This document shows, in pieces, positions 28,718-62,396 of a stretch of 64,000 nucleotides of DNA. This stretch comes from Macrostomum lignano (taxonomy: Eukaryota): positions 149,505-213,504 of the forward strand of contig NIVC01002011.1 of the NCBI GenBank assembly GCA_002269645.1, written 5' to 3'. A program made the position numbers and the translations under genes. Numbering within the stretch: the stretch's first letter is position 1; each line of letters opens with the position of its first letter. The notes under the pieces were generated by a model. It ran no database searches, had not been told where the DNA came from, and saw only the letters and a list, made by a program, of their open reading frames with translations.

Positions 28718-31700
28718 TCAGTCGGACGGCCGGACCTCCCATGGGGCGCTTCCGTCAGTGTTGCTCACCTGGCGTCAATTGATGAGGGTAAAGGCATGAG
28801 TAAAAATGATGCGAAGGATTGCAAAAACTATTATTCTCACATTGCCAACGATGAATAAAAAAGGATTGTGATGGATGGGGTCACTTCAAATTGTCAAAAA
28901 CAATCGCTAAAGTTACTTTCAAAAGATCGGTTTCAACAAAATTTCGAGCTTCAAGTCACTGCTCTTGAAACTCGACGTCTGGACAATTTTTTAGCATCTA
29001 TAATATTGACAGGCTGCTCCGGCCCAACCATGCTTTACCCTGAATAAATCGTCTTTTGGCCATGGACAAATCGTTTTGGTTTAAATGAGCCCTCAACGGG
29101 TTTCCCCAGGCACTCACCTCAGCCACCAGCCCACCTCCGCAGGCCAGGCGGATTCGCTCCGAGGTCGCCGGCGAGTCCAGCTGGAAGCTGAGCTGGCCCT
29201 GATGACCGTTCGGAAGCTCGACCTGGCTGTCCAGCCTGGCCGCCAGCACCGCCTGCCTGATGGCCGTCAGCACCGAGGCTGCCAGGTTCAGCGGCGGCTC
29301 GCCGACCGCCTTGGACGAGTGAACGGCTTTGGGGTGCTCGCAGCGGCTGCCTCTCAGCAGGCGGATGTTCAGCTTCTCCGGGATGTCGGAGAAGCCAGGA
29401 ATTTTGTAAGCGCCGGGCCCGCGGGTCAGGAGGCGGCCATCGGGCGAGTAGCGAAGGTCTTCGATGGTGTACAAGCCGCAGCCCTGCGTGAAGGCGCCTT
29501 CCACCTGGCCGATGTCGACAGCCGGGTTGAGGCTGGCGCCGAGATCCATAACGATGTCGCAGCGTCGGATCACGTGATCGCCGGTCAGGGCGTCGATTTC
29601 CACCTCAGAGCAGGCGGCTCCGTAGGTGAAGTAGAGGGCAGAGTCGCCCCGGCCGCTGCGCCTGTCCGCGTCCTCCTTGGGCGGATTGAAGCAGAAGCCG
29701 CAGGCCGAGAGGCTGACGCCGGCCAGGTAGGCGGCGCCAACCCAGTCCTCCCAGGCGGCGGTCGGGTTCGCCTCGACGAATGGCGCCAAGCGTCGGCGCA
29801 ACTGCAGGCAGGCGTCGAGAACAGCCGGAGCGTTGATGTCGGTTGTTATGGAAGCGGCCGATGCCGTTGTGTTTGGGACCTGGAGAGGTGTTGAAATCTA
29901 TTGCAATGCACTGAATAGCCTGTCTCAGAAGCCCTGTTACATTGTGGTGCCTACGCACTTATTGTTGATTTGGGGTGCCTGCGCACTTGTGCTGGCGCTG
30001 GATAACCTTCAGCTCTAGTCCGTGCTGGCTGGTCGCCAGTCGATTGGCTGGTCCGGGGGCTCCCTCGCTCTCTCTCTGTTTCTCTCAGTTTCTCTCCCTC
30101 TGTTTGGGACCCGGCTTTCCTTCCCCCCAGCTTTTCTGCAGTTGATTGGCCAGTCCTCCCTGCCCTTTTTCTCTCTTTCCACCTTCTCAGTGACCCTTCC
30201 TCTTGGTCCAGCCGATCAGCTCTGCCTTGCGCGGCGCGCTGATTGGCTGGGCTTGGCAGTCAGTCGTCTGCTGTCTCGCCCCAACCTTTTTTGGTATTTA
30301 TATTGCCGTCTGTTCTCCTCCTCCCCCTTCGCTACCTTGGGCTCCTGTGGCGATTTGCCCTGCTCTGTGCCGTTTGACGGTCTTTTACTACCAATAAACA
30401 ATTTAACCCAGTAACGGCCAGCCATAAGTAATACGACCAGTAAGCTCTATCTCCTGTGTTTTGTCCTGTGTATGAGATTGCCAGATCCGCCACAAGTTCT
30501 CATATGTATTAAGTATATATGTTGGAATGTGCTCAGGCTTGAAACATTTGAGCTGGAGCTCGCCAAGATCATAAAAATTGTTCTAATAACTAGTAGGTCT
30601 ATTGCGCGTCCCAACGCTTCTGTACCCAGGCTGTACGAGCTACTGGGCTAGGAACCCAAATCGACCACCGTTACTACGCAGTCGTTTGCTATGCTCAAAC
30701 CTGCGCTGTGCTGTCTCTGCTATGCTTAGCTCATAAGCTGCCTTTATACTTTTAGCTATGCTTAGGTTCCATATGGAAGAACTTCAAGCAATGTCCCTTT
30801 GTCTCAAAAGAATCAAACCTTATCCGTGGAAGTCTCTGCAATGTACAGCCGCCCGATGGGCAGTTGAAGAGCCCTGGCGGCTACCTGGAGCAGCTTGGTG
30901 TGCACTCCCTGGCCCATTTCCACTCCGCCGTGACAAATCAGCACGGAGCCGTCAAGATAGATGTTGACGGTGGCTCCACTCTGCAGGGGGAATTTTTTGC
31001 CCATGCCGATGCCGTAAGCGATGGGGCAGAGAGACAGGCCACGTTTTTTGTGCCGGCTGGCGCGGTTAAAGACCTCAAGCTCTCGCAGGCGGCCATGATA
31101 GTCGGAGGCGGCCAGGCACTCCTGCCAGCAGCGCCACAGGTTGTCGCTCTTCACCGGAGCTCCGTTCGGCGTGATCTCGCCGGAGCGGAACAGGTTCAGC
31201 TCGCGAATCTGGCACTGCGAGAGGCCCATGGATTCGGCCAGGTGTGACACCGCCGTCTCCATGATGGCGCAGGCCTGCGGAGTGCCAAACGCCCGGAAGG
31301 CCGTGTTGGAGGCGAGGTTGGTGCGGCACAGCCGGATCTCAATGCTCAGGCTGGCTAGCCGGTAGGTCTCCATGCATGCGCGTAGCATCCGGCCGGCCAC
31401 GTTCTCGGACATGTCCAGCGTACAGCCGGCGTTCAGCAAGATGAGCAGGCGCAGCCCGATCAGCCGGCCATCTCTGTCCGCTGCCAGCTTGTAACGCGCC
31501 TTGACCGGGTGACGGCCTCCGGACACCGCCATGTCGTCCCAGCGGTCCAGTACGGCCCGCACTGGCCGGCCGAACTTCAGCGCGGCCACCGCAGCCGGAG
31601 TGGCGAGCTGGCTCGGCCGCGTCTCTTTGCCGCCGAAGCCGCCGCCGATCCGCTTGACCTTCACCACGATGCGATTCCTGGCCAGCCCCGTCACCTTGGA

Positions 31701-41607: not shown

Positions 41608-41915
41608 GTCTATTAAAACTCATTTAGGAGCAGCTTATTGTCGGGCAATGCTTTAAAACTGCTCTCAGTTACCGCAAGGCAATCCTGTAAAAGTTGTTTG
41701 AAATTTGATAATGCACATTTGTTAAAAATAAGTGCCTGGGGCATGTGGGGCAGGTCGCGCGACCCTTTCCGTGCGGTGTGCTCGTCACTAGACTGCTGGG
41801 AAATTATTGCTAACGCATGAAAGTCACAGAGCTAGATCTCAAGAGTAGAATTACTCATCAAATTAAAAACCAAGGGTCAACTTTTGTGGAGATTTAAATT
41901 TTCGAGCTTGTGAAG
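41608..41915 (+). mobile_element. Second copy of the interspersed repeat at 24215-24560
   Basis: Colinear homology running directly into the 16-bp array. Confidence 0.75.
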
Positions 41916-42810
41916 AGTCGAGCTTGTGAAGATTGGAGCTTGTGAAGAGTCGAGCTTGTGAAGAGTCGAGCTTGTGAAGAGTCGAGCTTGTGAAGAGTCG
42001 AGCTTGTGAAGAGTCGAGCTTGTGAAGAGTCGAGCTTGTGAAGAGTCGAGCTTGTGAAGAGTCGAGCTTGTGAAGAGTCGAGCTTGTGAAGAGTCGAGCT
42101 TGTTAAGAGTCGAGCTTGTGAAGAGTCGAGCTTGTGAAGAGTCGAGCTTGTGAAGAGTCGAGCTTGAGAAGAGTCGAGCTTGTGAAGAGTCGAGCTTGTG
42201 AAGAGTCGAGCTTGTGAAGAGTCGAGCTTTTGAAGAGTCGAGCTTGTGAAGAGTCGAGTTTGTGAAGAGTCGAGCTTGTGAAAAGTCGAGCTTGTGAAGA
42301 GTCGAGCTTGTGAAGAGTCGAGCTTGTGAAGAGTCGAGCTTGTGAAGAGTCGAGCTTGAGAAGAGTCGAGCTTGTGAAGAGTCGAGCTTGTGAAGAGTCG
42401 AGCTTGAGAAGATTGGAGCTTGTGAAGAGTCGAGTTTGTGAAGAGTCGAGCTTGAGAAGAGTCGAGCTTGTGAAGAGTCGAGTTTGTGAAGAGTCGAGCT
42501 TGTGAAAAGTCGAGCTTGTGAAGAGTCGAGCTTGTGAAGAGTCGAGCTTGTGAAGAGTCGAGCTTGAGAAGAGTCGAGCTTGTGAAGAGTCGAGCTTGTG
42601 AAGAGTCGAGCTTGTGAAGAGTCGAGCTTGTGAAGAGTCGAGCTTGTGAAGAGTCGAGCTTGTGAAGAGTCGAGCTTGTGAAGAGTCGAGCTTGTGAAGA
42701 GTCGAGCTTGTGAAGAGTCGAGCTTGTGAAGAGTCGAGCTTGTGAAGAGTCGAGCTTGAGAAGAGTCGAGCTTGTGAAGATTCGAGTTTGTGAAGAGTCG
42801 AGTTTCTGAA
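41902..42810. repeat. 16-bp satellite (tcgagcttgtgaagag), about 56 copies
   Basis: Period 16; occasional variants (ttgagaag, gagtttgt, gattggag). Confidence 0.97.
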
Positions 42811-43473
42811 GGGTTCTGTATTTTTCTCTCTCCTTTTCCTCTCTCTGTCAATGGAGATTCCACAGCCGAACAGACTTGGTACCAGTTTAATTATGTAGAA
42901 CGCTTCGTGAATCGTACAAAAATCGCTTAAGAAGTTTTTTATACGAGTGTATATTTAAAATTTGAAATCTGTCGTCCCGATCGGCCGACTTCTTCGAGTA
43001 GGCTAGGCAGAATATTTTGAACAGATTTTGTGAAGCAAAGTTGTTTTGTTTTTCTTTGAAAAAATGGTAATAAGGTAAATTAAGATTATTAAAACACTTA
43101 AGTTTATGGGCAGTTTTCAGGGAAACCTGTTGCTTGTCAATTAATGTTCTTTGTTATAATCGAGTTTTTTCTGTAATCTTTGGAAAAATTCAATTGTCTT
43201 CGTATAGTATTTTCTTTTATTTTTTATTATACAACCAACAAGCAACATGGCCTGGTCCAATCTGTAGGAATCAGAATCTCAAAAAATCTCAAAACATATA
43301 AGCTATATAAAACTCACATCGTAGGAGCTGGCATATAGTCAATCCTCTCTCGATAGTTAAAAAACCAACTTGCAGGCAGCCAAAATAGAAATAGTTTTTG
43401 TGGTGAAAGTCAACAAAATATTAAGTACTTTTACACGGTTTGATATAAGCTACAGTCACGTGACAGCGCGGTA

Positions 43474-46400
43474 TTAATCATCGAGCTGGCAAAGCAGAGC
43501 GCAGCCTCGCTTCACCCAGTGCGACGGCTTCTCGGTGCAGTTGAGCAGGATTGGCAGCACAAAGTTGGTGCTGTGACCTGTGGTGGACAGAACGCCTCGC
43601 CTCTCGGAGGTCTTGTATACCGGGCAGGTGTACCGATTTGAATTCTCGTCAATCTCTTCTCGTTTCATCGGTCGAAGCCAGATTACTGGCACGTGATCGT
43701 ACAGAATCTTTGGCAGTTGCTCGGCTAGGCAATTTCTGAATTGAATTAGAAGGGTCGGGACCATAGACAGTGTAAAAAGCTGAACTGAGGGGTCGGGACC
43801 ATAGACAGTGTAAAAAGCTGGACTAAGGGGTCGGGACCATAGACAGTGTAAAAAGCTGGACTAAGGGGTCGGGACCATAGATAGTGTAAAAAGCTAGAGT
43901 GAGGGATCGGGACCATAGACAGTGTAAAAAGCTGGACTGAGGGGTCGGGACCATGGACAGTGTAAAAAGCTGGACTGAGGGGTCGGGACCATAGACAGTG
44001 TGGACAGTTGGTCTAAAAAATTCTCTGGAAAGATTTTTAAGCGCACAGTATTTAATGGGGTTTTACCATAGACTATTTAAGGACGAGAACAATCCGTGCA
44101 GTAAAAATACACGAGGGAGATGGGAACGAGTACTGTAACATATAATCCATCTATAATATATTGTAAGCAACTTATTTTTTGACGCCATCTTCATATATTT
44201 CTATCTCAACTTTTTTGTCTACTTGATCGCTAAACTACTAGTAAGTACTATTTAAGGGTATAAGCTGAAGTTTAATCCTAGATTATAATTACAAAAATCC
44301 GGTTGCTGCTAGAGAACTGTATTAGGTATCGCCTACTAAAGAGTAGCTCGAAGTACGAAGTACGAAAGAAGCCAATATTTTATATTTTGAGCAAATATCA
44401 AGCGCACAGAACTTCAAACAAGTGTATTTATAGGTGAAGACCAGCTGACGAAGAGTAAAGACTCAAAAAAGCAGTCCTGGCCTTTGAGTTTGGAGTTCTA
44501 ATCCCGGACCCCGGTTGTAGAAGATCCTAAACTTTTTTGCAGAGTTTACTTATTGCAACAGACTAAAATTTTGTGATAGAAGCAGTTACTAAAATATTTG
44601 ATTTATTTTTGTTATAATCTGCAGCTACTTTCTTTTTTATGACCATTAAAATCTACTAGCATCCCGGACTCACCTGTCTCGATCCCACCTGGCCCCGTCC
44701 AGGTAAAGTCCAATAACGTAGGCGCCATCCTTCGGCGCGGTGGACATGCTGTCCACGGCCAGCACCTGGAAGTCGAAGCCGAGCAAGTCGATGGGGATGG
44801 TGTACTTCCTAGCGTAGTTCTGCGTCACACCCGTCAGGAAGGCCTGCGTGAAGAAGAAGCCAGCGATCCAAAACACCGCCGGCTTGTCCTCGTCGTACCA
44901 CTTCTTGAGGAACTTCAGGCGCTCCAGCAGGTCGTTGATGTAGCTGCCCAGCGGCTTGAGGCTCGGGTAGGAGGCGCGCATCCACAGGGCCGGCACCTTG
45001 CCCACCGCCAGGCTGCCGCCGAGGGCCTCGAGGTCGGCGTTCATCACCACCAGACCCTTGATGGCCTTCTCCAGGGACTGCAGCGAGGAGCGGACCGTGC
45101 CAACCAGCTTGTTGAATCGCTCCATCTCCTGGGTGAGCACGGTGTTCATGCTCTCCGTGTACACCACCGGGAACTTGCGAACCGCCGCCTCGAGGTCAAA
45201 GTTTGGCGGTAGCTTCTTCAGAATGTCGGTGGCGATCTCGTTCAGGTAGGAGTCGCTCTGGCCGGCCTTGCTCGATCCCGCCTGACCGAGGGTGAGCAGC
45301 ACCGAGTCGAACAGGCCGCGCGTCTCCTGCAGCTCCCGGCTGATGTCAACATTCTCGTGCATACCGAACACCTCCGGGTGCTGGTAGGCCGGCAGCTTCT
45401 TGATGAACTCCAGGTAGTCGGCGTAGTCCATCTTGTTGGGGATGTAGTAGTTGCCGGATGGGCTCAGCTTGTACTTCTGCTCGGTGACCACGCCGGGGTT
45501 GTAGAAGTCGGCCAGGATCGTCATGAGGCAGCGCCTGTCGCGGTCGTCGGTGACGCGGCCGCCATAGTTGCACTCGCCAGTCAGGTAGGTGATGGCGTCG
45601 TAGGGCACCTGCTCGTACTCGTTGACGAACATGCGCAGTTGGCGCACGGAGATGCTCAAGTCAGAGTCGTTGAAGCCGTAGGGGATATTCCAGCCCATCG
45701 GGCCGAACTTCCGGCGCTCCTGCACCAGCGCGTGGAAGAAGCAGAGGCTGTACAGCAGCTTCTCGAACGTGGCCTCTTTGCCGGGGCAGCCGTTGAAGAA
45801 TGATGGGTCAGAGATGGGATCGTTGAGGTACGACTGCAGCAGGTTCTGCCGCAGGCCGGTCGGCGGCTCGTTGGTCATCTTGACGCCGTTCTGCAGCACC
45901 GTGACGGGGAACTTCGGACTCGGGTAGCTGGTGAGCCACAGGCGGAAGTCCTGATGCGTGTTCTCCCTGGCCAGCCACTCCTCGCAGATCTTCTCCAGCT
46001 CGCCCATCCAGCTGACGGCCAGGTGACAGTTCTGCAGCATGATCCAGCTGCCATCCTCCATGGCCTTCTCAATCTTCCTGGCCGCGATGGGTCCCTGGCC
46101 CTGGCCGAGCGAGATCGAATCGAACTTGTTCCCGCTGAAGCCCATGTCGTCCACGAATTTCAGCAGCGCCATGGTGGGATCCGCGCCCGGCGACAGCACA
46201 AAAATCATCGGCACATCGCGGCGCGAGTCCTGATAGGAGCGGCTCAGATCGAACGGCGGCGGCTCCACGAATTTTGGGCCGAGCTTCTCTCTGACGTACT
46301 GCGTCACCATTGGGATGATCTTGTCTGGCCGGATGCAGCGGACCACGATGATGCGCTTGAACTCGTCCAGCTTGGTGTGCCACGGCTCGGGCAGGGTCGC

Positions 46401-49400
46401 CTCGTGCGGATCTTTGCTCTCGTAGAACTGCTTCCATTCGGAGATGTGGTCGCAGAAGTGTTGCCTGGAAAATTAACAGAAGTGGCTGTGTGCTCTCCAG
46501 GCCTTGCCCACCGGATTTTGACCAGCTGCCCCGATTCCATAGGTAAAGATCTTCGTTGGATTACCTGAAGATACGCTCCAGGAACACCTGTTTCCAGCTA
46601 TACCTGAGTGATCAGCACACCAGTTTCCAGCTATACCTGAGTGATCAGCACACCAGTTTCCAGCTATACCTGAGTGATCAGCACACCTGTTTCCAGCTAT
46701 ACCTGAGTGATCAGCACACACCTGCACGGAGTTACCCGGGTTCACCCGTTCTCACCTGAATCCCTTGAACGCGGGCAGGTCAGACATGCGGCAGATTTCG
46801 TCCCAGCTCTTTTCGGACAGCCAGGACGGGTCCGGATTGGGCAGCTTGTTCTCCAGTCCGACTCCGCCAGTGAGGAGGAACAGCAGCTCCTTCTCGTCAA
46901 GTTCGCCTCGAGCACTGCAAAATGGGTTTTGAGCAATGGCGATGACTAGAGCAGTTCCAAATGTTCTGGTACTAGTGAATCAACCATATTGATTGCGTGA
47001 TTGTGTGAATCAAGCTCTGATTTTCTTGCTTTTTCAATCTCTCTACCAAAGTGCTTGAAGTATACTACTTACAATAGAGCATTAAATAGACTGTGAATAT
47101 TTTTTTGTTTACAAAACTTAGGCAATTGTGATATAAAGTGTTTTATACAAACTAGCCGATAAATTTGATTGCAAAACAACTGTACCGGAAAGGTGACATG
47201 AAGCACTGCAATCGGTAATGTGCTTAACAAAAGATCCAATTAAAAATAATAAAAAAGAGCAACAAAAGCTCAGATTAGTCCTCACAGCGCAGTGTTATAG
47301 TGGCAGGTTGGATAAGTATAGCATGGACAGTGGCTGGAGCAGCGAAGAGACAGAACTATTTTAACTCGGAAGAAGAAGAAGAAGTATTTCAAAATAGTCT
47401 AAATTAGCTTGCCAAGCTTCATTAGACCGGGGGTTGGGGCTGAACTTACGACATGAGCTGGGTGGTCATTAGAAATGAGAATAGCAGCTTATCGGTGGCA
47501 AATAGCGACCGACAGACATTAGTATAGAGCGATATGGTGAAGTGCTCAATCAGATAGCGGATTCGCTTCTCCAGAATGCGGCTCTTATTACTGAAATGAC
47601 GGTGGAAAGCGTTGGCCAGGCGGGCTGGCGCTACTAAGCTACTAATAGTTAGTTAAATAGCAAATTAATCACTGTTAGTAAGCGTATATTATATACATAA
47701 TTATTGATTAATAGCCGTGGTTAATTGTTATTAATAATAATAAAATCAATCAATGCTAGATTAGCGGGACCGCAATCATATTGCCGAAATCGATTCGGCC
47801 TCAGAGCTTTCGTCATCATAATCCATATCTACGAGCTGGGATTATGAACTCGATCTCACATCACTAAATTGGTGCAGAGCTTTAATGAGAAAAGCAGCTT
47901 GTCCTTGGCGAACAGGGAGCGGCACACATTCTCGTACAGATTGTACTGAAAATGGTCCTTCAGGTAGCGAATGCGGCGCTCCAGAATCTTTGACTTGTTG
48001 CTGAAAATTATTTTAACTAATTGTTTTAACTTCGTGATGGATTGAATGCACGACTTTATTACATATTGTGAGTTAAATTTATGCATCTTTCAGTGACGCG
48101 TACATTTGGGAAAAAGTGATGCAAACGATAAAATTAAATATAAGTTATGCATGATGTATGATACTCGTAGTAATACTAAAGCACTGAAATATACATGATA
48201 GGCATCGCGTGAGAGAAGTTGACTGATCTGACAGCCAATCAGCTTGAGTGGAGTGAGGTGGGTGCCCATGAGAGGTAGAAAACGACTAGGCATCATTTTT
48301 CCAGCCAATCAGCATCACGTTTGTAGACTAGAACTCTCTAGCCAATATTGTGTGAGGAAAGGAGGAGCTTCAAAGGAGGCAATAAAATCACCAATATTCT
48401 CACCTTTCATTGATGGAGCTGATGTAAAGGTTGACAAACCAGATCAGCGAGTACTGGTACATCGGATCAATGTTAGGCAGATCCGTGATCGAGAAGAACA
48501 GTATCGATGAGTGGTTTGCAATTGGCGCGTAGTCCATGCGGGCCGCATCAATTTTCTCTTGAGTTTTCTCTGCCACCTAAATTAAATATCAAATGTGCAG
48601 TTAGTATAAAAATTCACTAGCGACATAGGACTTGTGCTGATTTTATCACTAATATAATGTATTGATTAGCAATTTCTTAACTTCTAGACTTCCGCAGATA
48701 AGTTTAAGATTTAGGGCCATCTTAAACGTGCTATTCAGCTGCATGCTAACCGTAACCAACTCTGTTTAACTTTTGCAGTAGTGATGGTGGCGAATGCGCT
48801 AGGCCACTAGGCTAGCGACATAGTATAAGTGTACATGCTTGAAAGCACCGCCTCACCTTCTGCTTCTTCTGAATGTCGTCGGACAAGATCTTGGAAGAGT
48901 CGAGAATCTGGATGGCGCTCTCGTTCTCCAGGATGTTGCCTTCGGCCTCGGCCAGAGTGGCCAGAATCTTGTCCTCGATCTCTTTCAGCTGGCGCCGGTT
49001 CTGCGCAGTCATCTTAATCAGCGACTGCCGCTCCTCCTCCAGGTCCGGCCTAGCGGGATTGATTTGAATTGGAAAATGCGTTTGAGCCTACTGATAGTAG
49101 AATTCACAGTAATCAGCCATAGCTAGCTAAAACAGGTGTGTCTAAACCACCACTCACTTCTCCTTAGCAACCACGATGCCAAGCAGCTGGTCCTCCAGAC
49201 CCTCCGGCGTGATCATGAAGTTCAGAAGGGACACCTTCACGGCGATCTCCGGTAGGTAGTGCGGGTTCCTCAGCTTTGTGGTGATGAAGAACTTGAAATC
49301 TTTCGAGTATTCGATGGTGGTTTCGCCCAGACGGATCATGTCGACTCCACCTAGAGGGATTCGATCATTTTTAAAGTATAACTAACTGCAATAAATGTTC

Positions 49401-52400
49401 CTCATTCCTGTGCGTTCCAAAGCAAAGCTATGAAATTAACGATGAAAAAATATATTTTGCTCTAAAAGAAATAATTCAATATTAAAGGTGAGTGACTTCT
49501 GTGAAAATGGAATTTCAAGGGATGAACAAGTGCACAAAACTTTTACACTCAATCTCCAATAGTCTTCACATGCCAAACTTAAGGAATCGTGCCTTGGTGG
49601 AATTCTCAAAGCCCTCTATCTCGATCCTTCGGCTCGGTGACACAGCCCTCTATCTCGATCCCTCAGCTCGGTGACACAGCCCTCTATCCCATCCCGATCC
49701 CTCAGCTCGGTGACACAGCCCTCTATCCCATCCCGATCCCTCAGCTCGGTGACACAGCCCTCTATCCCGATCCCTCAGCTCGGTGACACAGCCCTCTATC
49801 CCGACTCCATGCATTATAAATTATGATAGTTTATTTAGTAGTTTCTATTATCTGTCGCCAGTGGAATCATGCAGATGCAAGACCGAACACATGCGGACCA
49901 AAGAAGCTGCTCATGCACCGCTCATGCACCGGATGCGCAGACAGACGGCCTCATCGTGCAGCCGTGCAGCTGGTTATTATGTACTTTTTGTAGAGCCGAC
50001 ATGCGAGCTCACCGAGGCCGCGAGTCAGGCTGGAGGCTGACGCTGAGATGTCGTACCGGCTGCCGCTGCTGGCTCGAGATTCGTCTAATATTTTTTGCCG
50101 AGATTAAATTAGCTTTGGTATTCTACGAATAATTCGCTTTGTGCTTGGCTCAGTTTTATTGTGGGAACAGTTTTTCTTATAGAGTGGCCCGCTGGGTGTA
50201 TTCAATCAATATATGCAGTGTATGCTCGTACATACGTAACTCTAGTCACACACAAACTGTTTGTGAATTGCCGACTCGAAAAAATTGAACTAAACAAAAC
50301 TAAGGTGACACGGTTTTGTTCGCAGGGTAACCAAATATAATTCTATCTGTTGTTATAACTGGAAAAATGATCGTCTTACTCTGTCCTCTAGCTGAAATAT
50401 TCGATAAGTTTGTTATTTTCAATGATTAGTAATGCTGTTATGATTATGAGAGACATGCATTCCTGACATTACCAATAGATATATTGTCATGCATTATATG
50501 GTTTGCTACTGTTTTGTTTTTAATTAGCAAAAATTAGATATTAATATATTATCAAAGACAATGGTGGTTTATCTCAGCTATCGTGCCTGTAGCTTCAATA
50601 AACAAAAGCCGATTCTTTGAACTGTCGCGAGGCAGTGCAGAAAACCTACTGAAATATTGTGTCTAAACTCACTCTGCTTGAACGTCTGCTTGAGCAGCAC
50701 CGGTTCCAGGCTGGGGTCCAGCTCCTCTCCGACATTCTCTAGTAGCAGCGGGTTGCCGTAGCTGATGGCCATCTCCATCTGGCGCATGTAGTTCGAGTCG
50801 CTCAGTTTGATCACGGCGAAGCCTGGCGTCGACTTGTATGTGTTCTTGATCCACTTGTTGGCCTGGCCTTGCGGATCGATCATGAGCGGCCTAAACGTGT
50901 CGATAGTAAGCTTACGTTAAATCACGTGACAGCAGAATCAACTGAGTTCCTTTGGTGAAGACCAGGGAGTAGCGGCATCCCATCGATGGACTGGGGGAGT
51001 TGCGGAATCCCATCAATGGACTGGGGGAGTTGCGGCATCCCATCGATGGACTGGGGGAGTTGCGGAATCCCATCAATGGACTGGGGGAGTTGCGGAATCC
51101 CATCGATGGACTGGGGGAGTTGCGGTATCCCATCGATGGACTGGGGGAGTTGCGGCATCCCATCGAAGCAACGCTTTTACGCAAAAACCGAATTTGTGCG
51201 TCTTTGCACTGTCGAGATTCAAAATGGTATATTACAATCGATTGCTTAGCACTCACCAGCGCCTGGAATTGGACACAATGACCGAATTGTCAATGGAGAA
51301 CGCGTCTCTCGGCAGGCCGGCAATGTTCCAGGCCTGGATCTGCACGGGATCACCCAGACAGACGGTCAGGGAGAAATTATCCGAACAGGGAATATTCTTT
51401 TCTTTGCACAGCTTCACCCACTCGTTGGTGGTCTGGGACCTGTAGATCATGGTGAATGGGCCCAGGTAGGCAATAACACCTGCGGATATGAGCACATCGC
51501 CAAGCAGGTTGTCGTAGATGCTCTGCAGGTTCTTGGCCGCCTGATCCCAGCGGTCCTTCTCCCCTCCAAGGCCGCCGATGAGCTTCTTGGCTCTGTCCAG
51601 CTTCTTGGCGCAGAGATCGACCTCCATCTCTAGGCGCGCCTTCTCATTCTGCGCGTCCTCCAGCCGCTGCTTCAGCTGGGCCAGCTTGTCCTGCACGGCG
51701 CGCAACTCGCCCTGCTTCTGCGCCAGAATCTCCATGTTGCTCTTCAGCTCAGACTCGGCCTCGGCCAGCTTGGCCTTCTTCGGGGCCACCACCTTGGCGA
51801 CGCGATCGTAGACCTCCATGGCGAGGATCCACTTGCACAGACCTTCAGCTGCGGACGATGCACGTGACACCTTGCTGGGCTCGAACTCGGGATTTGGTAT
51901 GTACTCCTTGCGGATCTTTGTCATCACCGCGACGGGTATGTTGTCTTTGTCATACTCTTTCAGATAATTCAGGAAATTCATGTCGTTGATCAGCTTCTTG
52001 GACGGGCCCCAGTAATCGAGCACCTTTTTGGGTCCGCCTGCCGGGTCTTGAATCTTGTCGGGCGGCACCTGGCGCATTACGCACACGGCGGCCATCACGA
52101 TCTTTACGCCTTCGGGAGGATTCTGCATCGTTTTCACGATGGTGATATCACTGGGCTTCAGGGTATTCAGCGCCTCCAGGGCGGCCTCAAGAGCTGGCAG
52201 GGCCTCAGCCAGGTCCGCTTCGCATTCATCCTTTAACGCACGCGAGGAGGCCGCCTTCTCGTTAACCATCGCCTCCTCCTTGGTCACCTTGTCCTCCTGC
52301 TCGGCAACTACAACCGATTCGTGCTCGATAACTTTCATAAGCTCAATGTTCTCAGCGCTGGCCTGCACCAGCTGCGGCTGCAGAGCCTCCAGCTTCTCCT

Positions 52401-55400
52401 GCATGTCCTTCACTTGCTCACCAGCGAAGGCCAGCTTGTCCAGACCATTGACGTAGCGCCGCTTTTGGCGCATCGTTTCCTCCTGTTTGGCATTGATGAG
52501 GCCTCGGAAGCTGAGGATAAGCTCTAAATAGGAGGTGGGCGTCACGTATGTCTTACGTCCCATCTCCGTCAAAAACTTTTCTGACAGCAGTCGAATGCTG
52601 GTGTGGAAATTCTGCACAATCTTCACCACGTCGGTCCTGTGGTCATCCTCCATATCGACTGACTCGAAGGACTTCATGGCCACGCGTTCCAGAGCATCTG
52701 GTGGCCAGGGCTGGAACCAGTCAATTGTGCAGCAGTTGATCAGGCTGGGAAACTTCCGTAGCCGATTCCTGAATGCGTCGCCAATAGGCGAGAAGGCGAT
52801 CACAATGTGCAGGTTCTCTCGCACCCGATTCACGAAGAATGCGTACAGGGCGATTGGAGAGAAGTCGGCGTTCTTGTCGCCAGCTTGGGCAAATGGCCGC
52901 ACGGTCTCCATGATCTCAACCTTCTCGTCGTTGGGGAAAAGGTTGGGAATTTCTCCCGTGTTTAGCAGATTGTCAATGTCCTCCAGGAAGGTTTCCTCTT
53001 TGATCTGCGTGTCGGCCATCAGGAAGACGGTTTTCTTTCCTTCAGCACCGGCTTTCTTCATCATCTTCTTGACGTCCTCGCGCCACTCGGTCATGCCGTA
53101 ATTCTTTGAGATTTCCGGCTGGCAGATGATGTAGCCAGCCATTGAGGTGGCCAGCCGCGTTAGCGACTGTCTACCAGAGCCGCCGACGCCGACAAGAAGG
53201 GCGTGACCTCCTGGCGTCCTGAGGATGCGGCAGATTCTTGATAGATGCTCTAGTACGTAGCGGAAGATGACCAGGTGCATCTTGTTCTTTTGAATGTTGT
53301 TGTACTCGTCCAGAGCCTGCTCGACAATCGGGTACAAATCGTCAATGCTCTTTGCTTCTTCGTACACCCGCTCATCAGGCTCAAGATCCGGGTTCATGAA
53401 GTCGCCAAAGATCAACGATCTGACGTCTTCCTCGCTGACTGACCCCTGCCCGGTACCGCCACCGGCCAGATGCTCAAACACGGACTCGAAGCTGTCCTTG
53501 AAGTGGTTCTTTACTGAGTCCTGCAGCAGCTTGAATAGCCATTTCCTGTCCGTGTCGTCTGTTAGACGATCGTAAAAGACGCGCATCACCTCGTGGCACC
53601 ACAGGCGAGTGAAGACGCGTTTCTCTGTCACCTGCTCGCGCTTAATCAGACAGACACCCAGGATGATTCGGCTGAAGTCGCGCAGGTTGAACACGTAGTG
53701 ACTCTTAGCCGGCGTTGGCAGGAGATTCTTGATAGCTGCCTTGTAGACCTCCATGGTCGAGTGCACGATGGTACTGCCGATGGCGAGGAAGTCCGATGTG
53801 AAGCCTTGCGTCTTCATGTACGTATTCATCAGAGCTGTGAAAATGCGAATCATTGTGTCATCGTTAAATGGCGTCATTGAGACGATGTTGAAGTGTCGCA
53901 TGAAGCGCGGCGTGATGTCGTTGCGGCCGCCACCCGGTGGTCCCATGGCGGCGATGAAGTAAACATCCTGAAGGATGATCTTGGAAGTGTCCTTCAAGTC
54001 GTACCAGTTGCCGTGGTCAAAGTACTGGCGAAGCAGCTCAATGGGCGGCTGGGCTCCGTACACCTCCTTCTGCGGCATATTGATGTCGTCAATGAAAATG
54101 ACAGCCTGCTTGTTGATCGGCGGTCCGAAGATTCCCTTGCGGCGCCTGTCCAGCTTTGACATGATGACGGTCTGCGTCTGATTGGCGCTTGTCTGAGCAC
54201 TGAAATTCACGAAATGAGGCACAAATTTGTCCTTTGACAGCTCGTTCATCATCTTGTCCTGGACGTAGACGGATTTTCCCGTGCCGGTAGGGCCGACAAA
54301 CATAAGCGGCCGTGATTTCTCAATGCAGAGATCCATGATGAACTTGTAGCGTGCGGTGTCCATGGTGGGCACCAGGATCTCGCGGATCTTCTTGCCGGCA
54401 AACAGATCCGCGCCGCGAATCAGATCGTTCCAGTGGCGCCACTGGCCTCTGGCCTTGGTCTGCAATGGCAACAAAGGCAGTGCTTGCTCTACTTCCGACT
54501 AAGTCAGATTTCTGCTGCTGACCCTATGAAAATGCGTGTGAATTCTTGAAATAAAGCATTTTCATAAAAAAGATAAAAAAATCTTTCCTCTTTGTGACTG
54601 GCTGAAAAAACACATTTATATGAAATTTGACACAAATAAAATCGTGATTCTAGCCACTGTGACTGTGCCACTTTGGTCATGACAATTAACTTACAACAAG
54701 GTTGAGCCTATTAAACTGGAAGTTTGCACATGATAGAAGAAATTGTTTGTTAGCTTGCGTTATGCTTTGTTAGACAGACTGGCAGAATTGAAGCTTAGTT
54801 GTAGCAAGTGCATACCTCGTACATGTAGTCATAGACCATTCCATTTTCTGGGAACACGGTCTCAATCTTGCCTATCTCCTTTGGTATCGGGTTAGCCTCA
54901 TTGCGACCACTGATGAGTTCGCGGAAGAACTTGTCGAATTTTTCTCGACTGTCGACGTCCAGAATGCCGCCGATGGACCACGGGATGGCAAAGAGCCAGG
55001 CAGCTACAATCCACGTCTTCAGGTGCTTGTTGTCCTTGGCGTTCTCGGCGTTGACGTGCTCGTCCATGAGCATGTCGATGAAGAACATGCATGACCGCAC
55101 CAGATTAGTCTGGCTGCTGTTGATGTACTCTCGGCAGCTCTTGCGCACAAAGTCCAGGCAAGGATCAATGGCCCACTCCATGAGGTGCGACATCACTTCT
55201 TGGCTGCCGTCCTTGATCAGCACCTCGGGGAAGCTTTCGATCCAGGACTTGACCAACGGGCGCCAGCCCAGAGTGCTGGGCTCGAGGTAAATCATGCCAC
55301 ACCGGCTGACAGTGGCCGGGGACGCCTGCGACAGGTCCATGGTCTCGAAGATGAGACTCATGACCTTGCTCATCTGGATGATTTCTCCAGACATCAGACA

Positions 55401-58400
55401 CAGCTTCTTGTTGTCGTCTGCAATTAAACAAAAATATTGACAGTGCCGTTGAATATTTCACATTTTATTGATAAATTGTGCTATCTATTTAATCCAAGCT
55501 CACCCAGAACAGTGTTCATGGACTCAATCCACAGCGTATCGATGGGCCCATCGAAAATGACCCACTTCCGGTCGGGTGTGTCGTTAGAAGCGAATTCTCG
55601 GAACGTGTTGGCTGTGATACCGTCGGTCCACTCGTGCGACACCGGGTCGAACTGGCCAAACAGCTGGCCCATTGTGATGGCTTTGGGATTGATGGTCCGG
55701 TACATGACCTTCTCGTAGTCTTCCGAGTAGCCGGCCTCGTTCAAATTGGTCATCGTCTCGGCCAGAACATGAAGCACACTCGTCTTTCCACCGAACGGTT
55801 CGCCCACCAGCATGAAGCTAAAATAGGAAAGCATTTATTGTGTACTGTTTGCTCATACGATAAACAATCAGCAAAAGCATTCACTCGGCAACTCACCCGT
55901 GACGTACGATCATCATTTCGTAGGTCTGGATGATTTTCTCGGTAAAGAAGTCAACACTCTGCAGTTTGTGAGCCTCGCATACGCGACGAATTTCGTCGAG
56001 GAAGATCCTGTAGTCCGCTTCGGGCCTCTTAACTCCCGGAAACAAGTCGCTGATGATGCCCTCAAACAGTGGAATATCGTGCGACAAGAATTTTGGCAAG
56101 TTCACATCCAGGATGGAGCGTAGCAGCAGGATGTTCTCATCGTCATCTGGAAACTTCAGCTTGAGATTTCCGGCAGCTGAGAGCACAGCCTTGACGGCAC
56201 GCATTCCGTAGTCGTAGTGGCTCTGCGAACTGAGCAGCTCGGAGCTCAGTCGGTAAGTGGTAACAATCTTCACGGCCAGGTTTCGAGCGTCCATGAAGCC
56301 GAACGAGTAAAGAGAGATCTCTCCGATCATGGCATAGTCTGGCACCATCATAGCCACCGGCCGGAACAGCACCTTCAGGTTGTCGGGCAGCTCGGAGCGG
56401 CCGGCATATCCGGGGTTCATGGTGATGCACACGTAGCAGTTGGGGTTGAGCTTGAGCAGGGTGCCCTCGAAGTCGAACTCAGAGGCTTTGCTTCGCACGG
56501 CGATGATGATGCTGAGAATCTGCTGCGCCACCACAGACAATACTTCGAGCTCGATTCGATTGAACTCGTCGAAGCAGGCCCAGGCGCCGCTGGATGCCAG
56601 GCCCTTGAAGAACTTCCCCATGGCAATGTAGTCCAGGCCGTCCGAGCAGTTAAAAACAACACACTGTACAGCCAGAGCCTTCGCCAAATCCTTTGTTGTT
56701 TCCGTCTTGCCCGTACCGGCTGGACCCTCGGGAGCGCCATTCAAATTGAGGTGGTACGCGCCGATCAGAGTGCGATAGCACCTGTCCGTAAGCGGCGTGA
56801 TGACAAGACGCGGCGAGTTGCCCAGGTACTCGTAGGCGTACCGAACTTTGGCGTTGGTCAGGCGGATGAACACGTTCTCGTCCTCCCAGTAGTAGCGCAT
56901 CTGCGCCAGCCAATTGAAGTCGTTTTCATCGGACACGCCCTTCTTCACCATGTCTTCCACCACGTCCCGGGAGTGCACATCGATAACGACCAGCGCACCC
57001 AGAGTGATGCGCTGCTGCGCGTTCAGCTTGCCACGAACCAGCACAACGATGTCAGATAGCTGGTCGGACAGCTTCTTGTAGTAGTCCTTAAGACCCTGGA
57101 CACCGGCGCTTAGCGAGTCGTGCACCTCGGCTGTCCAGTAGATCTGGGAGACACACAGGACTACCTGTCCAGGCCAGTCACAGACCCACTTCTTTCGGGC
57201 CTCAATAGCATAGGCCTATAAAGAGAAAACGGTTGAGGTGACCTTGCAGTTAATGAAGATTGATTAATCAGCGCACACAAAAACATTTTATGGTTTGCAT
57301 GCGAAGGGAAGGAAATATGTGATTTTCAATACTGTTATTGATTGAGTCATTTAACCGACAAAATTATTAGTACGAGTAGAATTTCGTGATTAAAAACAAA
57401 AATAGACAGTGACTTGACAATTGATACACTGGGAAACAGCAAGGATTGATTTTGGCGTCTCGGGATGGCACTGGTCAAACATTCAATTTCAAACTTCAGT
57501 TCACCAACAACTGAACAAAAACAAGCACGACAAATTGAGAAATTACATGCGTCGTGTCCGCTGACAAGAGCGACGGATATTTCTGAAACGTTGGCATTCA
57601 GTGCGACAATAACTGCATCTCATCGTATTGTATAAAAAGTACCGATCGAACTGTACATCGTGACAGCCTAATAGTTTACCATGCTTAGTGACATATATCG
57701 GACGCAACGAATTAAATTTACTCGTACTAGCAAATATGACCAGAGAAAATGCTTAAGCTATTGATGCTATTGTGTGCCCAATAAAATTAAATAAACAATT
57801 TTAAAGCTTAGAAACGTATCAGCTCATCGGCGGGACTAGACGCAAACATGATGTTGTTGATTCGTTTGTCACACAAGTCCTAAAAAACGATTTTACGATG
57901 GTTGAGTTGTTGCCGCTCTGACGGAATCTATTATAAGAGAAAGATCAAACGCTACGAATGGAACGGAGATTTGCTCAATTTTTTGTTTAAATAAACTCTA
58001 AAAATGGATTAGCTGAGGGAGAGAGAAACAGGACTTACGTCGTAGGACGCAGCGATAACATCGCGCATGGACATCAACATGACGTCCTGCACCTGAAGGA
58101 GCCACTTTTCAACCGCTCCTCGCGCCTCAGACGTGCTGATGGTCTGGCTAAACTTGATCTTCTCTCCTTCGCTCGAATACATCCCGTGAATGTCCAGCGC
58201 ACTATCGAACTCCAACTTCGCGATGCCCTCAAAGCACTTCTTAAGATGCGGCTGGACGCGCAGCGGGTCCTTTGTCTCGGACAGAATCTCCAGCATCTCA
58301 TCGTTCGACAGGAAGAAAAATCGAGGGAAGAAAAGACGCTTCTTTTCCAGGTAGGAGTTCAGACCCTTCTGGATCTTGTCCAGCAGATCGTTGGAGTCTT

Positions 58401-61400
58401 TCAGTTTCTCCAGGAGGCCGGGCATGTCGGTGGCCTTCAGCAGCTTGGGGTCCTTGGCAGTGTTCTTCATGATGTCGCGCCAGTTGCGATCCACAGTTTG
58501 GAACAGGCGGCCCTGTTCCGGCATCTGCTGCATGATGTCCTCAGAGCTGAAGATCGGCTCTAGGTACAGCCAGTTCGCCTGCACCTTCAGCCACTCGTCG
58601 ATGGTCTCCTGAATGCGCAGCAGGCGCTCTTCCCACTCTCGGATTTCCTTTTCAAATGGCCGGATGAACGGCGAGCCACGCATCGTCTGCGTGCGCATGA
58701 TCTGGTCGTCGAGCTGGGTTTGAATATCGTCAACACTGGACAGAATGTTGATGCCGGTCTCGCGGTAGGGGATCAGGGAGAAGCTGATTGGCTCCCAGTC
58801 TTCGATCATCTTCTTCATGCCTGAAATGCCGGTATGTGGAATGCGTGTAATAACCACGAACTAGAAATTTGATAGAAGCCAAATCTGAACTCACCCTTCT
58901 CAAGGCTGTGCTCTTTGTAGCGGCAGCGGATATCTGGCCGAACTCCTCCATGAAGGCGTCCAGCTTGAGCCCGAGCACCTTGATTAAAGTTGTTCCAGAA
59001 TCCGGGGTGATGTCGAATCCGCAGATGCTGGACATTTTTTCCCAGTGACGCTGCCGGATGCCCGGGTTGCACAGAATTTCGATGACGTTGATCTTCTCCT
59101 TGAACTCGCGGATCTTCTCCGTTAGAGTGTTGCAAATGTCCAGTGCAGCGGGCGGCTTAACTTCCTCTTCATCATCTTTTTCCTCCTCGCCACCCTCACC
59201 TTGAGTGTCTTCCTCCAGCTTCTTTCTCTTCTTCTTCTCGCGCTCCCGCTCTTCCTTTTCGGCCTGCATCTTCTTCAGCCGGTTGTTGAACACCTTGGAG
59301 ACGCGGAAAATTTCGCGGCTAATTTCATCCACCTCTTCGGCAATGCGCTCGGCATCCAGGGCGAGGAATTCACCTTTCAGCCACCTGAAGAGAGAGATAA
59401 AACATTACGCTAAAGTATTTCCATGGTTCGATAAACACTATTTCATGCACTTACTGGTTCTCCTTATTCAAGTATCGGAATGTGTTCTTAAAGATGCTAA
59501 GGAACGGCTGCATCAGGTTAGTCAAGTCGTCGATATCTGGGAATGGCGTCACGGGTACTTGTACAGCTGCTCCTCCTTGTTGATCCACTCGGAGTCGGCC
59601 CGAGCGGTGTCCAGGCGCTGCTGAACTTTGTTGACGTCCTGCACGTACTGGCTCATGATCTCGAGATCCATCTCGCCGTAGTCGTTGAATTCATCCACTC
59701 GGTTGCGGATGCGCTGCAACTCGGCAATTAGCTTCTCCTTGCGCTCAATCAGAAGCTTCTCACCTTGAGTCTTGGACTCCTCTTGCAGCTGGAAGAGTTA
59801 TTTGATTGAAGCAAAGTAACTCAATGCGTACTTTAATTTATCATATTCAGCAGCTACTTACCGTCTCGTTTTCATCGAAGATTGGCGAGATCCTCTTCGG
59901 CCAAGTCAGGACTTCACTGTTCAGCTGGAGATCGTCGTCGTTGAAGATCCAGACGTCCAGCAAGTACTGCAGGCGGTTTTGTGATTCCTTGATCTTCTCA
60001 TTCAGCGTCACCATGCCAGTGCTACGAGCTTGCTCCATAAATTTAATCATCTCCATGAGCTCCTCGCTGGTCTCCGGTTTCTTCTGAGCTCTGGCCTTGA
60101 CGTAGTCGAACTGCTGGCAGATTTTTGTGTTCTCAGCACGGTGGTCACGCACCACCCGCTCCAGCAGGCGGTCGGCGTAGCCCTGAGCCACTTCGGCGAG
60201 GCCGTTCTTCAGCTCCTCGACGTTCAGCCGGATGAGATCGTAGAACTCTATGGTTGGATTACGCCGAATGGCGTACGAGATGGCGCGATACTCTTCGATC
60301 AGCTCGCAGTACTCGGCGAACGTGTGTTCCTCGGTTAGGAACTTCTCTACTCGAGAGTTGGCCGTACCGTCGACCAGGTAATCGTACCGCTCGTGGTACG
60401 ACCTGAGGCTGTTCTCTACGCTTTCAAAGTAGCGCGCAGCAGCGGATTTTAGTTTGGCTTTGGCCAACTGCACGATGTGCTCCGCCAGCTCCGTCGGGAC
60501 GTTCACATTCGGCGTGGCTGACAGCTGCGAGCTCACTGTGGGAATCGAGCTTAGGCTCTTGTTCACCTCATCTACAACCGAGAGTAGGAGGTCCTCGTAC
60601 ACCGCGTACTCTGGATCGACGCTCATTTGGCGATCTTGGAAGGACAGGAACATGTTGAGCTGCGGCAGCCTGAAGCGCTGCTCCTCATCAAAGAGGAGAA
60701 CCCACGCATTGACGGTTTCCTCTTTGAGCAGCTTGAGCTGGTTTGACATGAGAGTGGTTACGCAGCTGTAGAACGGCTCCTGAAGGTCCACACGAAGCAC
60801 TGAAGTTGTGCGTTCAGAGAAGATCTTCATCACCTCCCGGTACCAGTGGCCGAGTAATCGCTCTTCCATCTTTTCGCATTCGTAGGTAACATTTGTGCGC
60901 AATGTCTCAAACTCCATGGGGCTTTCGGCCTTGTACTCAGCCAAGTCCAGAATTATCTGCTGGCCGAGCTCACGCTGGCACAGCTCCAGCAGCTTTGGCA
61001 TTTGTGGATACAGAATCATCAGCCGGTAAGAAATTTCTCGCTTATTCGCTACGAAACTCTCGTGCCACTCCTTTGAGAAATCGAGTCCTCTGAAAATTTT
61101 ATTGAGTTCGAAATCGCTTACTTAAATTTTAGGCTTCTAGGCTAGGCTTACTTAAATTCTCTCAGTGATCAGTTAAATTAAAGTTGATGACCTACACTGG
61201 TTCCTCTGACGGTTCCACTAGATCATCGTCCTCCAGGCCAGGGACATCAGGCTTCTTCAGAGACAGTTGAACTAAAATCGATGTTTCAGCTCGTAAAATT
61301 AGATAATCTGCATTGAAAGCAACCCCTTTCAAGCGGGTTTTAGTTTAAAAATTTTGAATTACTCACCAAGAGATTTCTTCATGCTTGTGTCAAAGTTCTG

Positions 61401-62396
61401 ATTTACTTCAGCCAGCACTTCGTTCAGAAAATCGTCCTTGCCTTCGCGAAGATGTTCGGCAATCTTGTGCTTTATGTTGACCAGCCATTCCGGCGACATG
61501 GGCGGAATCGGGCTGCTTTCAACGCACTTTCGTAGGAATTCGTAGTTTAATCGCACTTTTCTGTCATCGCTCATCATCTGAAAAGTAGTTTTTTGCCTAG
61601 CTAAAGTTCTATAAGCAAGACAAGTATTTGCAGAGATTGAAAATCATCTCAAGCCAAAATAAAACACAGTGGAAAGGCGCACCTCCTGTGGATACTCCGG
61701 CGGAGTTGGTTTCGACAGATCTTTGTTGTCATACTTCATTTCGTGCTGTGTTTTCAGCGCCCTCTCGATTCTAATTAAAAATGAGATTAGAGTTAAAATA
61801 TAATTTTTCAGATATGAAATTTAGATACCCCAAAATGTTTGAGTATAAATTTTTGATACTTAACAATAAATTACTGCAAATTGCGTTCAGAGAAAGAATG
61901 TTGCAGTATGTACAAAATATACCCTGTTAATATAGAGTAAATTCACAGTTTTAGAATCTAATATTTTTGGTGAAATCCAACGTACCATTATTAAGGCCAC
62001 ATCCAATGTTTTAGGTTGCAAGTAAAATACAACTTATAACCAATTAAGCATATATATAGATGTCTAAGTTTCTAAATACATATATGTAAATTTGATAGTT
62101 AGATAAATAGTGCAAAATTGAAATGCAGATCAACGATCTAAACAGAAAAGGATCAAAGTATCGATTAAACACTAAAATTTATCAACTGGGGCAGCAAAAG
62201 TCAAGCTTTAACCACCAAATAATGTCACTTACAAGAACTGTTGCAACTGATCTCTTTTCTTGTCGGCCAGGCGGTAGTTATGCAAATTAAGAGCGGCGAA
62301 TTCACCCTCTTCAACTCCGGATTTGCTTTTCACATCATGCTTTCCATTAGATCGTTTCTCCCCCGCGATTGGGGGGAGTTTTTCGTTGCTGCTCAT
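43474..62396 (-). CDS. DNAH12: Axonemal inner-arm dynein heavy chain, DNAH12-like (DNAH3/7/12 group), ~3,980 aa; two apparent 1-bp frameshifts in this sequence
   Basis: Exons 62396-62233 (MSSNEKLPP), 61770-61683, 61577-61367, 61271-61196, 61089-59862, 59788-59455, 59384-58895, 58820-58039, 57215-55897, 55817-55504, 55417-54816, 54459-51257, 50890-50673, 49350-49158, 49049-48857, 48576-48404, [48000-47860 or 47590-47450], 46914-46756, 46464-44674, 43735-43474. P-loops [33 protein letters not shown]; C-terminus [15 protein letters not shown]. Family is certain; the DNAH12 orthology rests on remembered motifs ([23 protein letters not shown]). Confidence 0.9.
43751..44001. repeat. 38-bp minisatellite (ggggtcgggaccatagacagtgtaaaaagctggactaa), ~7 copies, last dynein intron
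   Basis: Tandem units starting ~13 bp from the acceptor; each unit carries CCATAGAC or a 1-nt variant. Confidence 0.92.
44441..44480 (+). ncRNA. Minimal type I hammerhead ribozyme motif (Penelope-like element type), probably inactivated
   Basis: CCAG-CTGACGA-A-GAGT-AAAG-ACTC-AAAA(AA)GCA-GTC-CTGG: stem I CCAG/CTGG, stem II GAGT/ACTC, GUC triplet; G12 reads A. Confidence 0.55.
46584..46721. repeat. 33-bp minisatellite, 4 copies, dynein intron
   Basis: tttccagctatacctgagtgatcagcacacc(a/t)g units. Confidence 0.92.
47450..47590 (-). CDS. Dynein exon 17b (alternative, tandem duplicate of 17a)
   Basis: tttcag acceptor, gtaagt donor, 141 nt, phase 2-2: [46 protein letters not shown]. Confidence 0.88.
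47860..48000 (-). CDS. Dynein exon 17a (alternative)
   Basis: tttcag acceptor, gtgaga donor, 141 nt, phase 2-2: [46 protein letters not shown]. Confidence 0.9.
49612..49806. repeat. 33/39-bp minisatellite, ~5 copies, dynein intron
   Basis: ctcagctcggtgacacagccctctatcc(catcc)cgatcc units. Confidence 0.9.
50965..51165. repeat. 30-bp minisatellite, ~6.5 copies, dynein intron
   Basis: gcggcatcccatcgatggactgggggagtt units. Confidence 0.92.

Follow-up and report, generated by a model that had tools for sequence, protein, structure and literature searches.

Does this flatworm dynein gene encode one motor or two? A 64,000-nt stretch of the Macrostomum lignano genome (contig NIVC01002011.1, positions 149,505 to 213,504; called the window here, with positions counted from its first letter) carries on its minus strand an axonemal dynein heavy chain gene of DNAH12 type, in which two similar exons, 17a and 17b, lie in tandem between exons 16 and 18. 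An earlier inspection of the letters, which we call the sequence-only reading, had taken them for probable mutually exclusive exons of the motor domain that maintain two isoforms. We found that comparison with other species strongly supports two maintained isoforms: the pair recurs in other flatworms, and the RefSeq database holds isoform pairs from other animals that differ only at this cassette. We conclude that 17a and 17b are probably functional alternative cassette exons, used one per mRNA and derived from an ancient tandem duplication, with their mutual exclusivity in M. lignano itself deduced from these comparisons.

The coordinates and canonical splice sites of the two exons were confirmed (Table 1). 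Each exon begins after 2 nt of a split codon and closes with 2 nt of the next one (phase 2-2). Because the split-codon phase is identical at both ends, either exon links exon 16 to exon 18 in frame, as had been claimed. We applied the criteria of Pillmann et al. (2011; PMC3228551) for clusters of mutually exclusive exons. 17a and 17b are neighbouring internal exons with nothing between them except the 269-nt intron, they agree in length (141 nt), phase and splice sites (AG...GT), and they are homologous (32/48 residues) over the same structural element, helices H8-H9 of the motor.

Codon by codon, 17a and 17b give the same residue at 31 of 46 whole codons, or 32/48 when the two split codons are included, which is the ~67% identity reported before; the substitutions KD to IE, E to T, K to T and LKLC to FLMT were all found again. 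Nucleotide identity was 59%, with differences at 31 of the 46 third positions. Different codons were used at 18 of the 31 conserved residues, in line with the heavy synonymous divergence already described. When the 17a or 17b peptide was compared with the whole window by tblastn, the sister exon was the sole other match (E = 4.5e-18), while the same search with the whole protein model revealed no second copy of any other dynein exon. The similarity of 17a and 17b is beyond chance. An assembly artefact was ruled out as the source of the pair by the 59% DNA identity and by its presence in three M. lignano contigs and in other species.

We assembled a gene model of 3797 residues from open frames and splice sites (61088 to 43474), which was 99.7-99.97% identical to the M. 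lignano proteins P0241 and P0361. The region of exons 16-18 matches contig NIVC01002011.1 of assembly GCA_002269645.1 at 100% identity, which agrees with a flatworm source. Compared with solved structures, its 1081-residue exon scored 1551-1576 bits with DNAH12, 1322 with DNAH7, 1246 with DNAH3, ~930 with DNAH1 and 821-838 with DNAH6, and the 321-residue segment around the cassette gave 480 bits with DNAH12 versus 414 with DNAH7. The top full-length database matches, from many animals, carry the name 'dynein axonemal heavy chain 12'. Pfam matches on P0241 and its orthologues (DHC_N2, AAA_6, AAA_7, AAA_8, MT, AAA_9, AAA_lid_11, Dynein_heavy) suggest that the gene has the full dynein motor architecture, comprising linker, AAA1-6, stalk with microtubule-binding domain and C-terminal region. 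Judged by these matches it is a DNAH12-type dynein heavy chain (single-headed inner-arm, IAD-3 group), and the order of the scores (DNAH12 > DNAH7 > DNAH3) bears out the earlier assignment. The closest solved counterpart is DNAH12 in 8J07 / 9FQR, an orthologous motor with whose residues 3057-3375 the 321-residue segment aligns gap-free over its full length (E ~1e-143), although it has a single cassette, b-like and ancestral-looking.

The place of the cassette in the motor was examined in an AlphaFold model of the 321-residue segment (exons 15-19), made with 50 aligned sequences (mean predicted local distance difference test score, pLDDT, 86). The segment is modelled as a long helical hairpin (residues 2-34/43-95), a helix at 108-121 and two further helices at 128-148 and 153-170. 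Residues 122-169 make up the cassette and coincide exactly with this final pair of helices plus the intervening turn. In the account of Gleave et al. (PMC4047620) the AAA5 small subdomain (AAA5S) begins with an elongated hairpin, H5/H6, which is the buttress, and goes on with H7, H8 and H9. Since the two helices follow the buttress hairpin and H7, they are H8 and H9 of AAA5S in that nomenclature, and the cassette is predicted to encode exactly these helices, right after the buttress hairpin. The model and the published nomenclature thereby support the earlier placement in the AAA5 small domain behind the buttress coiled coil. The interface that AAA5s forms with AAA5L has been proposed to coordinate ATPase activity, microtubule binding and mechanics (Niekamp et al., PMC6600642), and a functional effect of exchanging H8-H9 is plausible.

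Conservation in other flatworms, which the sequence-only reading had named as a check, was found in a trematode and a cestode. In Paragonimus kellicotti and Dibothriocephalus latus all four exons (4/4) have AG/GT sites, the M. lignano phase and length, and the same order, a then b; exon 16 is 173 nt long in all three species. The signature KRIRYLI(D/E)(H/Y)FT is common to 17b and the b exons of Paragonimus, Dibothriocephalus, Opisthorchis and Taenia. Opisthorchis viverrini (L003 71563-75282) has a b-type exon only, and no a-type remnant was detected in the gap-free 3.7-kb intron upstream of b. The lung fluke Paragonimus keeps both exons, and the absence of a remnant from this gap-free intron points to a secondary, lineage-specific loss of the a exon in the liver fluke Opisthorchis.

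Substitution patterns were compared between a and b within species and, for orthologous exons, across M. lignano, Paragonimus and Dibothriocephalus. Synonymous differences were at or near saturation (proportion pS, 0.58-0.99), against a proportion of nonsynonymous differences (pN) of 0.09-0.32. Given saturated synonymous sites and little amino-acid change, both exons are under purifying selection. In the paralogous M. lignano contigs L005 and L007, 15 and 30 events of difference from the window were counted over 1.9 kb; none of these falls in 17a and two fall in 17b, both of them synonymous third-position changes (47587 and 47473). The GC content of third codon positions (GC3) is 0.74 in 17a and 0.63 in 17b, and the GC content of the three introns is 0.37-0.38. 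By these measures 17a and 17b behave as constrained coding sequence.

Outside flatworms, RefSeq isoform pairs of equal length that differ solely in the 47-residue cassette were found in at least nine species, a nemertean and molluscs. The nemertean Lineus longissimus has the a cassette in isoforms X1 and X3 and the b cassette in X2 and X4. The corresponding mollusc isoforms are X1 and X3 (a) and X2 (b) in Haliotis cracherodii, X1 and X2 (a) and X3 (b) in Haliotis rufescens, X2 and X3 (a) and X1 (b) in Gigantopelta aegis, X2 (a) and X1 (b) in Argopecten irradians, X2 and X4 (a) and X1 (b) in Magallana gigas, X1 (a) and X2 (b) in Ostrea edulis, X3 (a) and X1 and X2 (b) in Liolophura sinensis, X3 (a) and X2 (b) in Dreissena polymorpha, and X1 (a) and X2 (b) in Physella acuta. 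These 'dynein axonemal heavy chain 12-like' pairs (for example Lineus XP_064633434 (a)/XP_064633435 (b), Magallana gigas X2/X1 and Physella acuta X1/X2) resemble the M. lignano pair in gene family, in the place of the cassette and in the a/b signature residues. They differ in being automated annotations from other phyla, whereas in M. lignano the models show either 17a alone or the two exons together. The a cassette of Lineus is 83% identical to 17a. In addition, a caenogastropod transcript contig from Logan contains the a cassette alone; it shares 94% identity with Batillaria, and the Batillaria gene model has b. Each annotated isoform of these orthologues has one cassette, as does the contig. 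By sequence comparison, conservation of the a/b pair extends to at least four phyla of invertebrates: flatworms, nemerteans, molluscs and brachiopods.

Outgroups indicated which form is older. The locus of the crinoid Anneissia japonica has one cassette copy between the homologues of exons 16 and 18. In frog, human, sea urchin and soft coral the protein carries a single cassette of b-like type. Mean identity to the single outgroup cassette was 82% for the b type and 70% for the a type, and the a type appears to be the derived form, with b close to the outgroup cassette. Separately, the exon-18 homologue of Anneissia occurs twice with identical peptide, 800 nt apart (L004 37280-37429 and 38080-38229). 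The second copy stems either from a duplication in the assembly or from a tandem duplication of the exon that took place separately in the echinoderm.

A neighbour-joining tree of 46-residue cassettes placed a and b of most species apart, with 82% support for a mollusc a group. All a-types came together with a bootstrap of 23.5% and the a cassettes of M. lignano and Lineus with 40%, and the neodermatan b exons were nested among the a-types. These features would be expected if the pair had arisen independently in different phyla, or had been repeatedly homogenised, by recurrent duplication of a duplication-prone exon; the His shared by neodermatan a and b at cassette position 33, a hint of gene conversion, points the same way. 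However, wherever both exons are seen they agree in length and phase and a lies upstream, a and b are not sisters in the tree for most species, and the a-type states K/R14, Q/E18, E/D23 and A31 (cassette positions) are common to M. lignano, Lineus, Lingula and molluscs. We consider recurrent origin unlikely. A single origin of the pair before these phyla split is likely on the sequence comparisons but not proven, because the tree leaves deep nodes poorly resolved.

Several findings weigh against one-per-mRNA use of both exons in M. lignano. The three NCBI transcript-guided models of the species (g8, g2 and g9) all have 17a, and 17b was found in none of the species' transcripts and in no protein derived from them. 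Nor did the protein collection yield a 17b fragment (best match 64-66% identical), a collection that holds no transcript-size M. lignano fragments of this gene. One form can suffice, as the loss of a in Opisthorchis viverrini suggests. Two UniProt/WormBase models of M. lignano (A0A1I8J266 and A0A1I8JJN8; P0366 and P0367) contain both exons in tandem; such tandem models are longer by 47 residues, and the reading frame does not forbid double inclusion. The 269-nt intron is spliceable and nothing in the frame bars the inclusion of both exons. Finally, no complementarity above shuffled controls that could enforce a choice was found between the introns (see below).

The first of these findings would fit 17b being a silent relic in M. 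lignano, an old duplicate that persists as an undecayed pseudo-exon while only 17a is spliced. The GC3 of 17b, which ranks at about the 6th percentile among the gene's 46-codon windows, and the loss of a copy in Opisthorchis agree with such a fate. Yet the frame of 17b is intact, its acceptor has a pyrimidine tract, and its donor GTAAGT is nearer to consensus than that of 17a. Although synonymous sites are saturated, 17b has b-specific residues in common with its cestode and trematode counterparts, both substitutions in 17b among the M. lignano copies are synonymous, and an unused exon would not remain open so long. A relic is therefore improbable in our view. We infer the use of 17b, and its exclusivity with 17a, from the other species and from structure, one H8-H9 being present elsewhere.

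Constitutive inclusion of both exons, giving a tandem H8-H9 repeat as in A0A1I8J266 and A0A1I8JJN8, was weighed in the same way. The exons are in frame with canonical sites, and automated models with both are not confined to M. lignano: they include the brachiopod Lingula (P0252), Sinanodonta (P0249), Plakobranchus (P0256), Saccostrea isoform X3 (P0392) and Taenia solium (P0267), which like the two M. lignano models always have the order a then b, as well as D. latus (P0004). A Mya model (P0272) is without the cassette altogether. Against double inclusion stand the NCBI models of M. lignano, which have 17a only, and the equal-length, one-cassette RefSeq pairs described above. H8-H9 is single in all solved dynein structures matched and in every non-spiralian orthologue sampled, and the five-helix AAA+ small subdomain has no room for a second copy (PMC4047620). 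Because the exon length is in frame, the tandem read-through models are probably annotation errors, and the M. lignano, Taenia, Lingula and some mollusc tandem models are probably wrong at the cassette. Double inclusion is, in our judgement, very unlikely.

We next considered how a choice between 17a and 17b could be enforced. Since 141 = 47 x 3, double inclusion or double skipping also keeps the frame, and policing by frame shift and nonsense-mediated decay was ruled out; the read-through models stay open. Steric hindrance from too short an intron was ruled out by the length of the a-b intron (269 nt in M. lignano, 156 nt in Paragonimus and 1199 nt in Dibothriocephalus); the M. lignano intron has a UACUAAC-like motif ~180 nt from its donor. 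U2/U12 incompatibility was also ruled out: donors are GTGAGA or GTAAGT, acceptors are YAG, and there is no ATATCCTT-type donor. A search of the three introns for docking/selector pairing, which the sequence-only reading had suggested, found no complementarity above shuffled controls: ungapped stems scored 23-26 versus a shuffle mean of 25-26, and 0.35-0.88 of the shuffles scored at least as high as the observed stems. RNAduplex energies computed for whole introns did not improve on those of shuffles, and a repeat search yielded just short AU-rich inverted repeats. Docking/selector pairing was rejected as unsupported, not disproved.

The a-b intron was identical in the three M. lignano copies, while the flanking introns carry 10 and 18 differences. 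From the flanking rates 2.9 and 5.2 differences would be expected (P of zero, 0.057 and 0.006, the comparisons not being independent). The invariant intron may be a constrained splicing-control element or the product of local gene conversion. Upstream of the pair, intron 16/17a has an exact 12-nt repeat, CAGCCAATCAGC, at 48232 and 48302 (+ strand), which together with AGCCAAT near 48339 (+ strand) makes three CCAAT-box-like motifs in ~110 nt (48232-48345).

If 17a and 17b are alternatives, their choice would produce two motors that differ in ~16 residues of the buttress-anchoring body and are otherwise identical. The H5/H6 hairpin of AAA5S is the buttress that pulls on the stalk. The swap could alter the coupling of ATPase-ring movements to microtubule affinity, or a surface that touches axonemal neighbours. 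The two forms might then be used in different ciliated cell types or stages. As a working assumption, the choice would be made by trans-acting, cell-type-specific splicing factors acting on the a-b intron rather than by a built-in RNA or spliceosomal constraint. Sperm flagella had been offered among the cilia that might use one form, but Macrostomum sperm is aflagellate (bioRxiv 10.1101/2021.03.28.437366), so in Macrostomum the a/b contrast must lie among somatic cilia. An example would be locomotory epidermal cilia versus protonephridial flame cells, whereas a split between sperm and somatic cilia is possible in molluscs and nemerteans. More tentatively, and with real doubt, we suggest that the a/b switch is older than the divergence of flatworms, nemerteans, molluscs and brachiopods and gave spiralians two mechanochemically distinct versions of one motor for different cilia.

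Axonemal dynein diversity is usually credited to gene duplication, with ~7-15 heavy-chain genes per species. The 17a/17b pair would show an inner-arm dynein diversifying instead by alternative splicing within its motor domain, apparently over the whole history of several spiralian phyla. A precedent in dyneins is the mutually exclusive exon of cytoplasmic dynein DHC1 in Schistosoma mansoni (Pillmann et al. 2011, PMC3228551), and alternative splicing within the motor domain has been remarked on in passing for some dynein heavy chain (DHC) genes (Kollmar 2016, PMC5100056). DHC1 is likewise a flatworm dynein heavy chain with tandem, equal-length homologous exons and split codons, whose exclusivity was inferred from an alignment of many DHCs. 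It is, however, a cytoplasmic dynein, and the DNAH12 cassette appears in neither PMC3228551 nor PMC5100056. The literature searched held no description of the DNAH12 splice choice. The earlier statement that none was known thus stands for searchable papers; the isoforms themselves are already present, uncommented, in the RefSeq annotation of other spiralians. The DNAH12 pair is a well-supported further case of a known type of feature, mutually exclusive exons in dynein.

In the Drosophila muscle myosin heavy chain gene (Mhc), clusters of alternative exons swap defined elements of the motor domain, with tissue use and kinetic effects shown experimentally. Mhc, a test case in PMC3228551, resembles the DNAH12 gene in principle, since in both a single motor gene has homologous exons that can stand in for one another and so exchange a structural element of the motor domain. 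It belongs to another motor family, and in dynein the functional effects of a and b would follow by reasoning from structure. In insect Dscam, 14-3-3zeta and Mhc, exclusivity is enforced by docking-site/selector RNA pairing. These genes share with the dynein a homologous alternative exon cluster in need of a barrier to double inclusion, but no complementarity above shuffles was found between the dynein introns, and the invariant a-b intron is the only hint of intronic constraint.

The added interest of the pair lies in its age, its breadth over phyla and its site. The swapped element is small (two helices, ~16 differing residues) and belongs to the buttress-bearing subdomain thought to relay nucleotide state to the stalk, and the natural a/b variants are a clean handle for structure-function work on the buttress relay. 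If true, the switch would supply natural, evolution-tested variants for asking how this subdomain tunes the coupling between ATPase ring and microtubule. The two forms are also candidate markers of cilia types in Macrostomum, oysters and Lineus.

Table 1. Coordinates of the cassette region and of the gene (window positions), and of the a and b exons in two other flatworms (positions in L002 and L001)
Feature	Position	Strand	Description
DNAH12-type axonemal inner-arm dynein heavy chain (putative), coding span	43474-61739	-	~17-19 exons, ~3950 aa
Exon 16	48576-48404	-	173 nt; last part of the buttress helix H6, plus helix H7, in AAA5S (predicted); 3' end ...YISSINE + AG, donor gtgaga
Intron 16/17a	48403-48001	-	403 nt; 37% GC; three CCAAT-like motifs inside
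Exon 17a (a-type cassette)	48000-47860	-	141 nt; acceptor ttttcag, donor gtgaga
Intron 17a/17b	47859-47591	-	269 nt
Exon 17b (b-type cassette)	47590-47450	-	141 nt; acceptor catttcag, donor gtaagt
Intron 17b/18	47449-46915	-	535 nt
Exon 18	46914-46756	-	159 nt; acceptor ttttgcag; opens T GCT CGA = ARGELDEKE, ends ...FKGFR; extension helices of AAA5S (predicted)
Paragonimus kellicotti (L002)	a 9627-9767, b 9924-10064		141 nt each; a-b intron 156 nt
Dibothriocephalus latus (L001)	a 4199-4339, b 5539-5679		141 nt each; a-b intron 1199 nt

The dynein copy in the window has two 1-nt deletions in 5' coding exons relative to the paralogous contig L005, at ~59553 and ~58916 (minus strand; CCC-G versus CCCGG and ACAAAG versus ACAAAAG), each of which shifts the reading frame. 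Because of these two frameshifts, the NCBI model of this contig (P0361) begins only downstream of the deletions. They reflect either long-read homopolymer error or a decaying gene copy. Four dynein introns contain minisatellites with units of 30-39 nt in 4-7 copies (46584-46719, 49610-49804, 50965-51166 and 43752-44001), and a 16-nt unit is repeated 57 times just downstream of the gene (41902-42811).

Elsewhere in the window are pieces of two genes of xanthine dehydrogenase/aldehyde oxidase type (13500-19300 and 29000-29900, minus strand; domains Fer2_2, CO_deh_flav_C, Ald_Xan_dh_C and MoCoBD_1/2), whose 3' parts are near-duplicates of each other. A reverse-transcriptase open reading frame of a retroelement lies at 9257-10558 (+).

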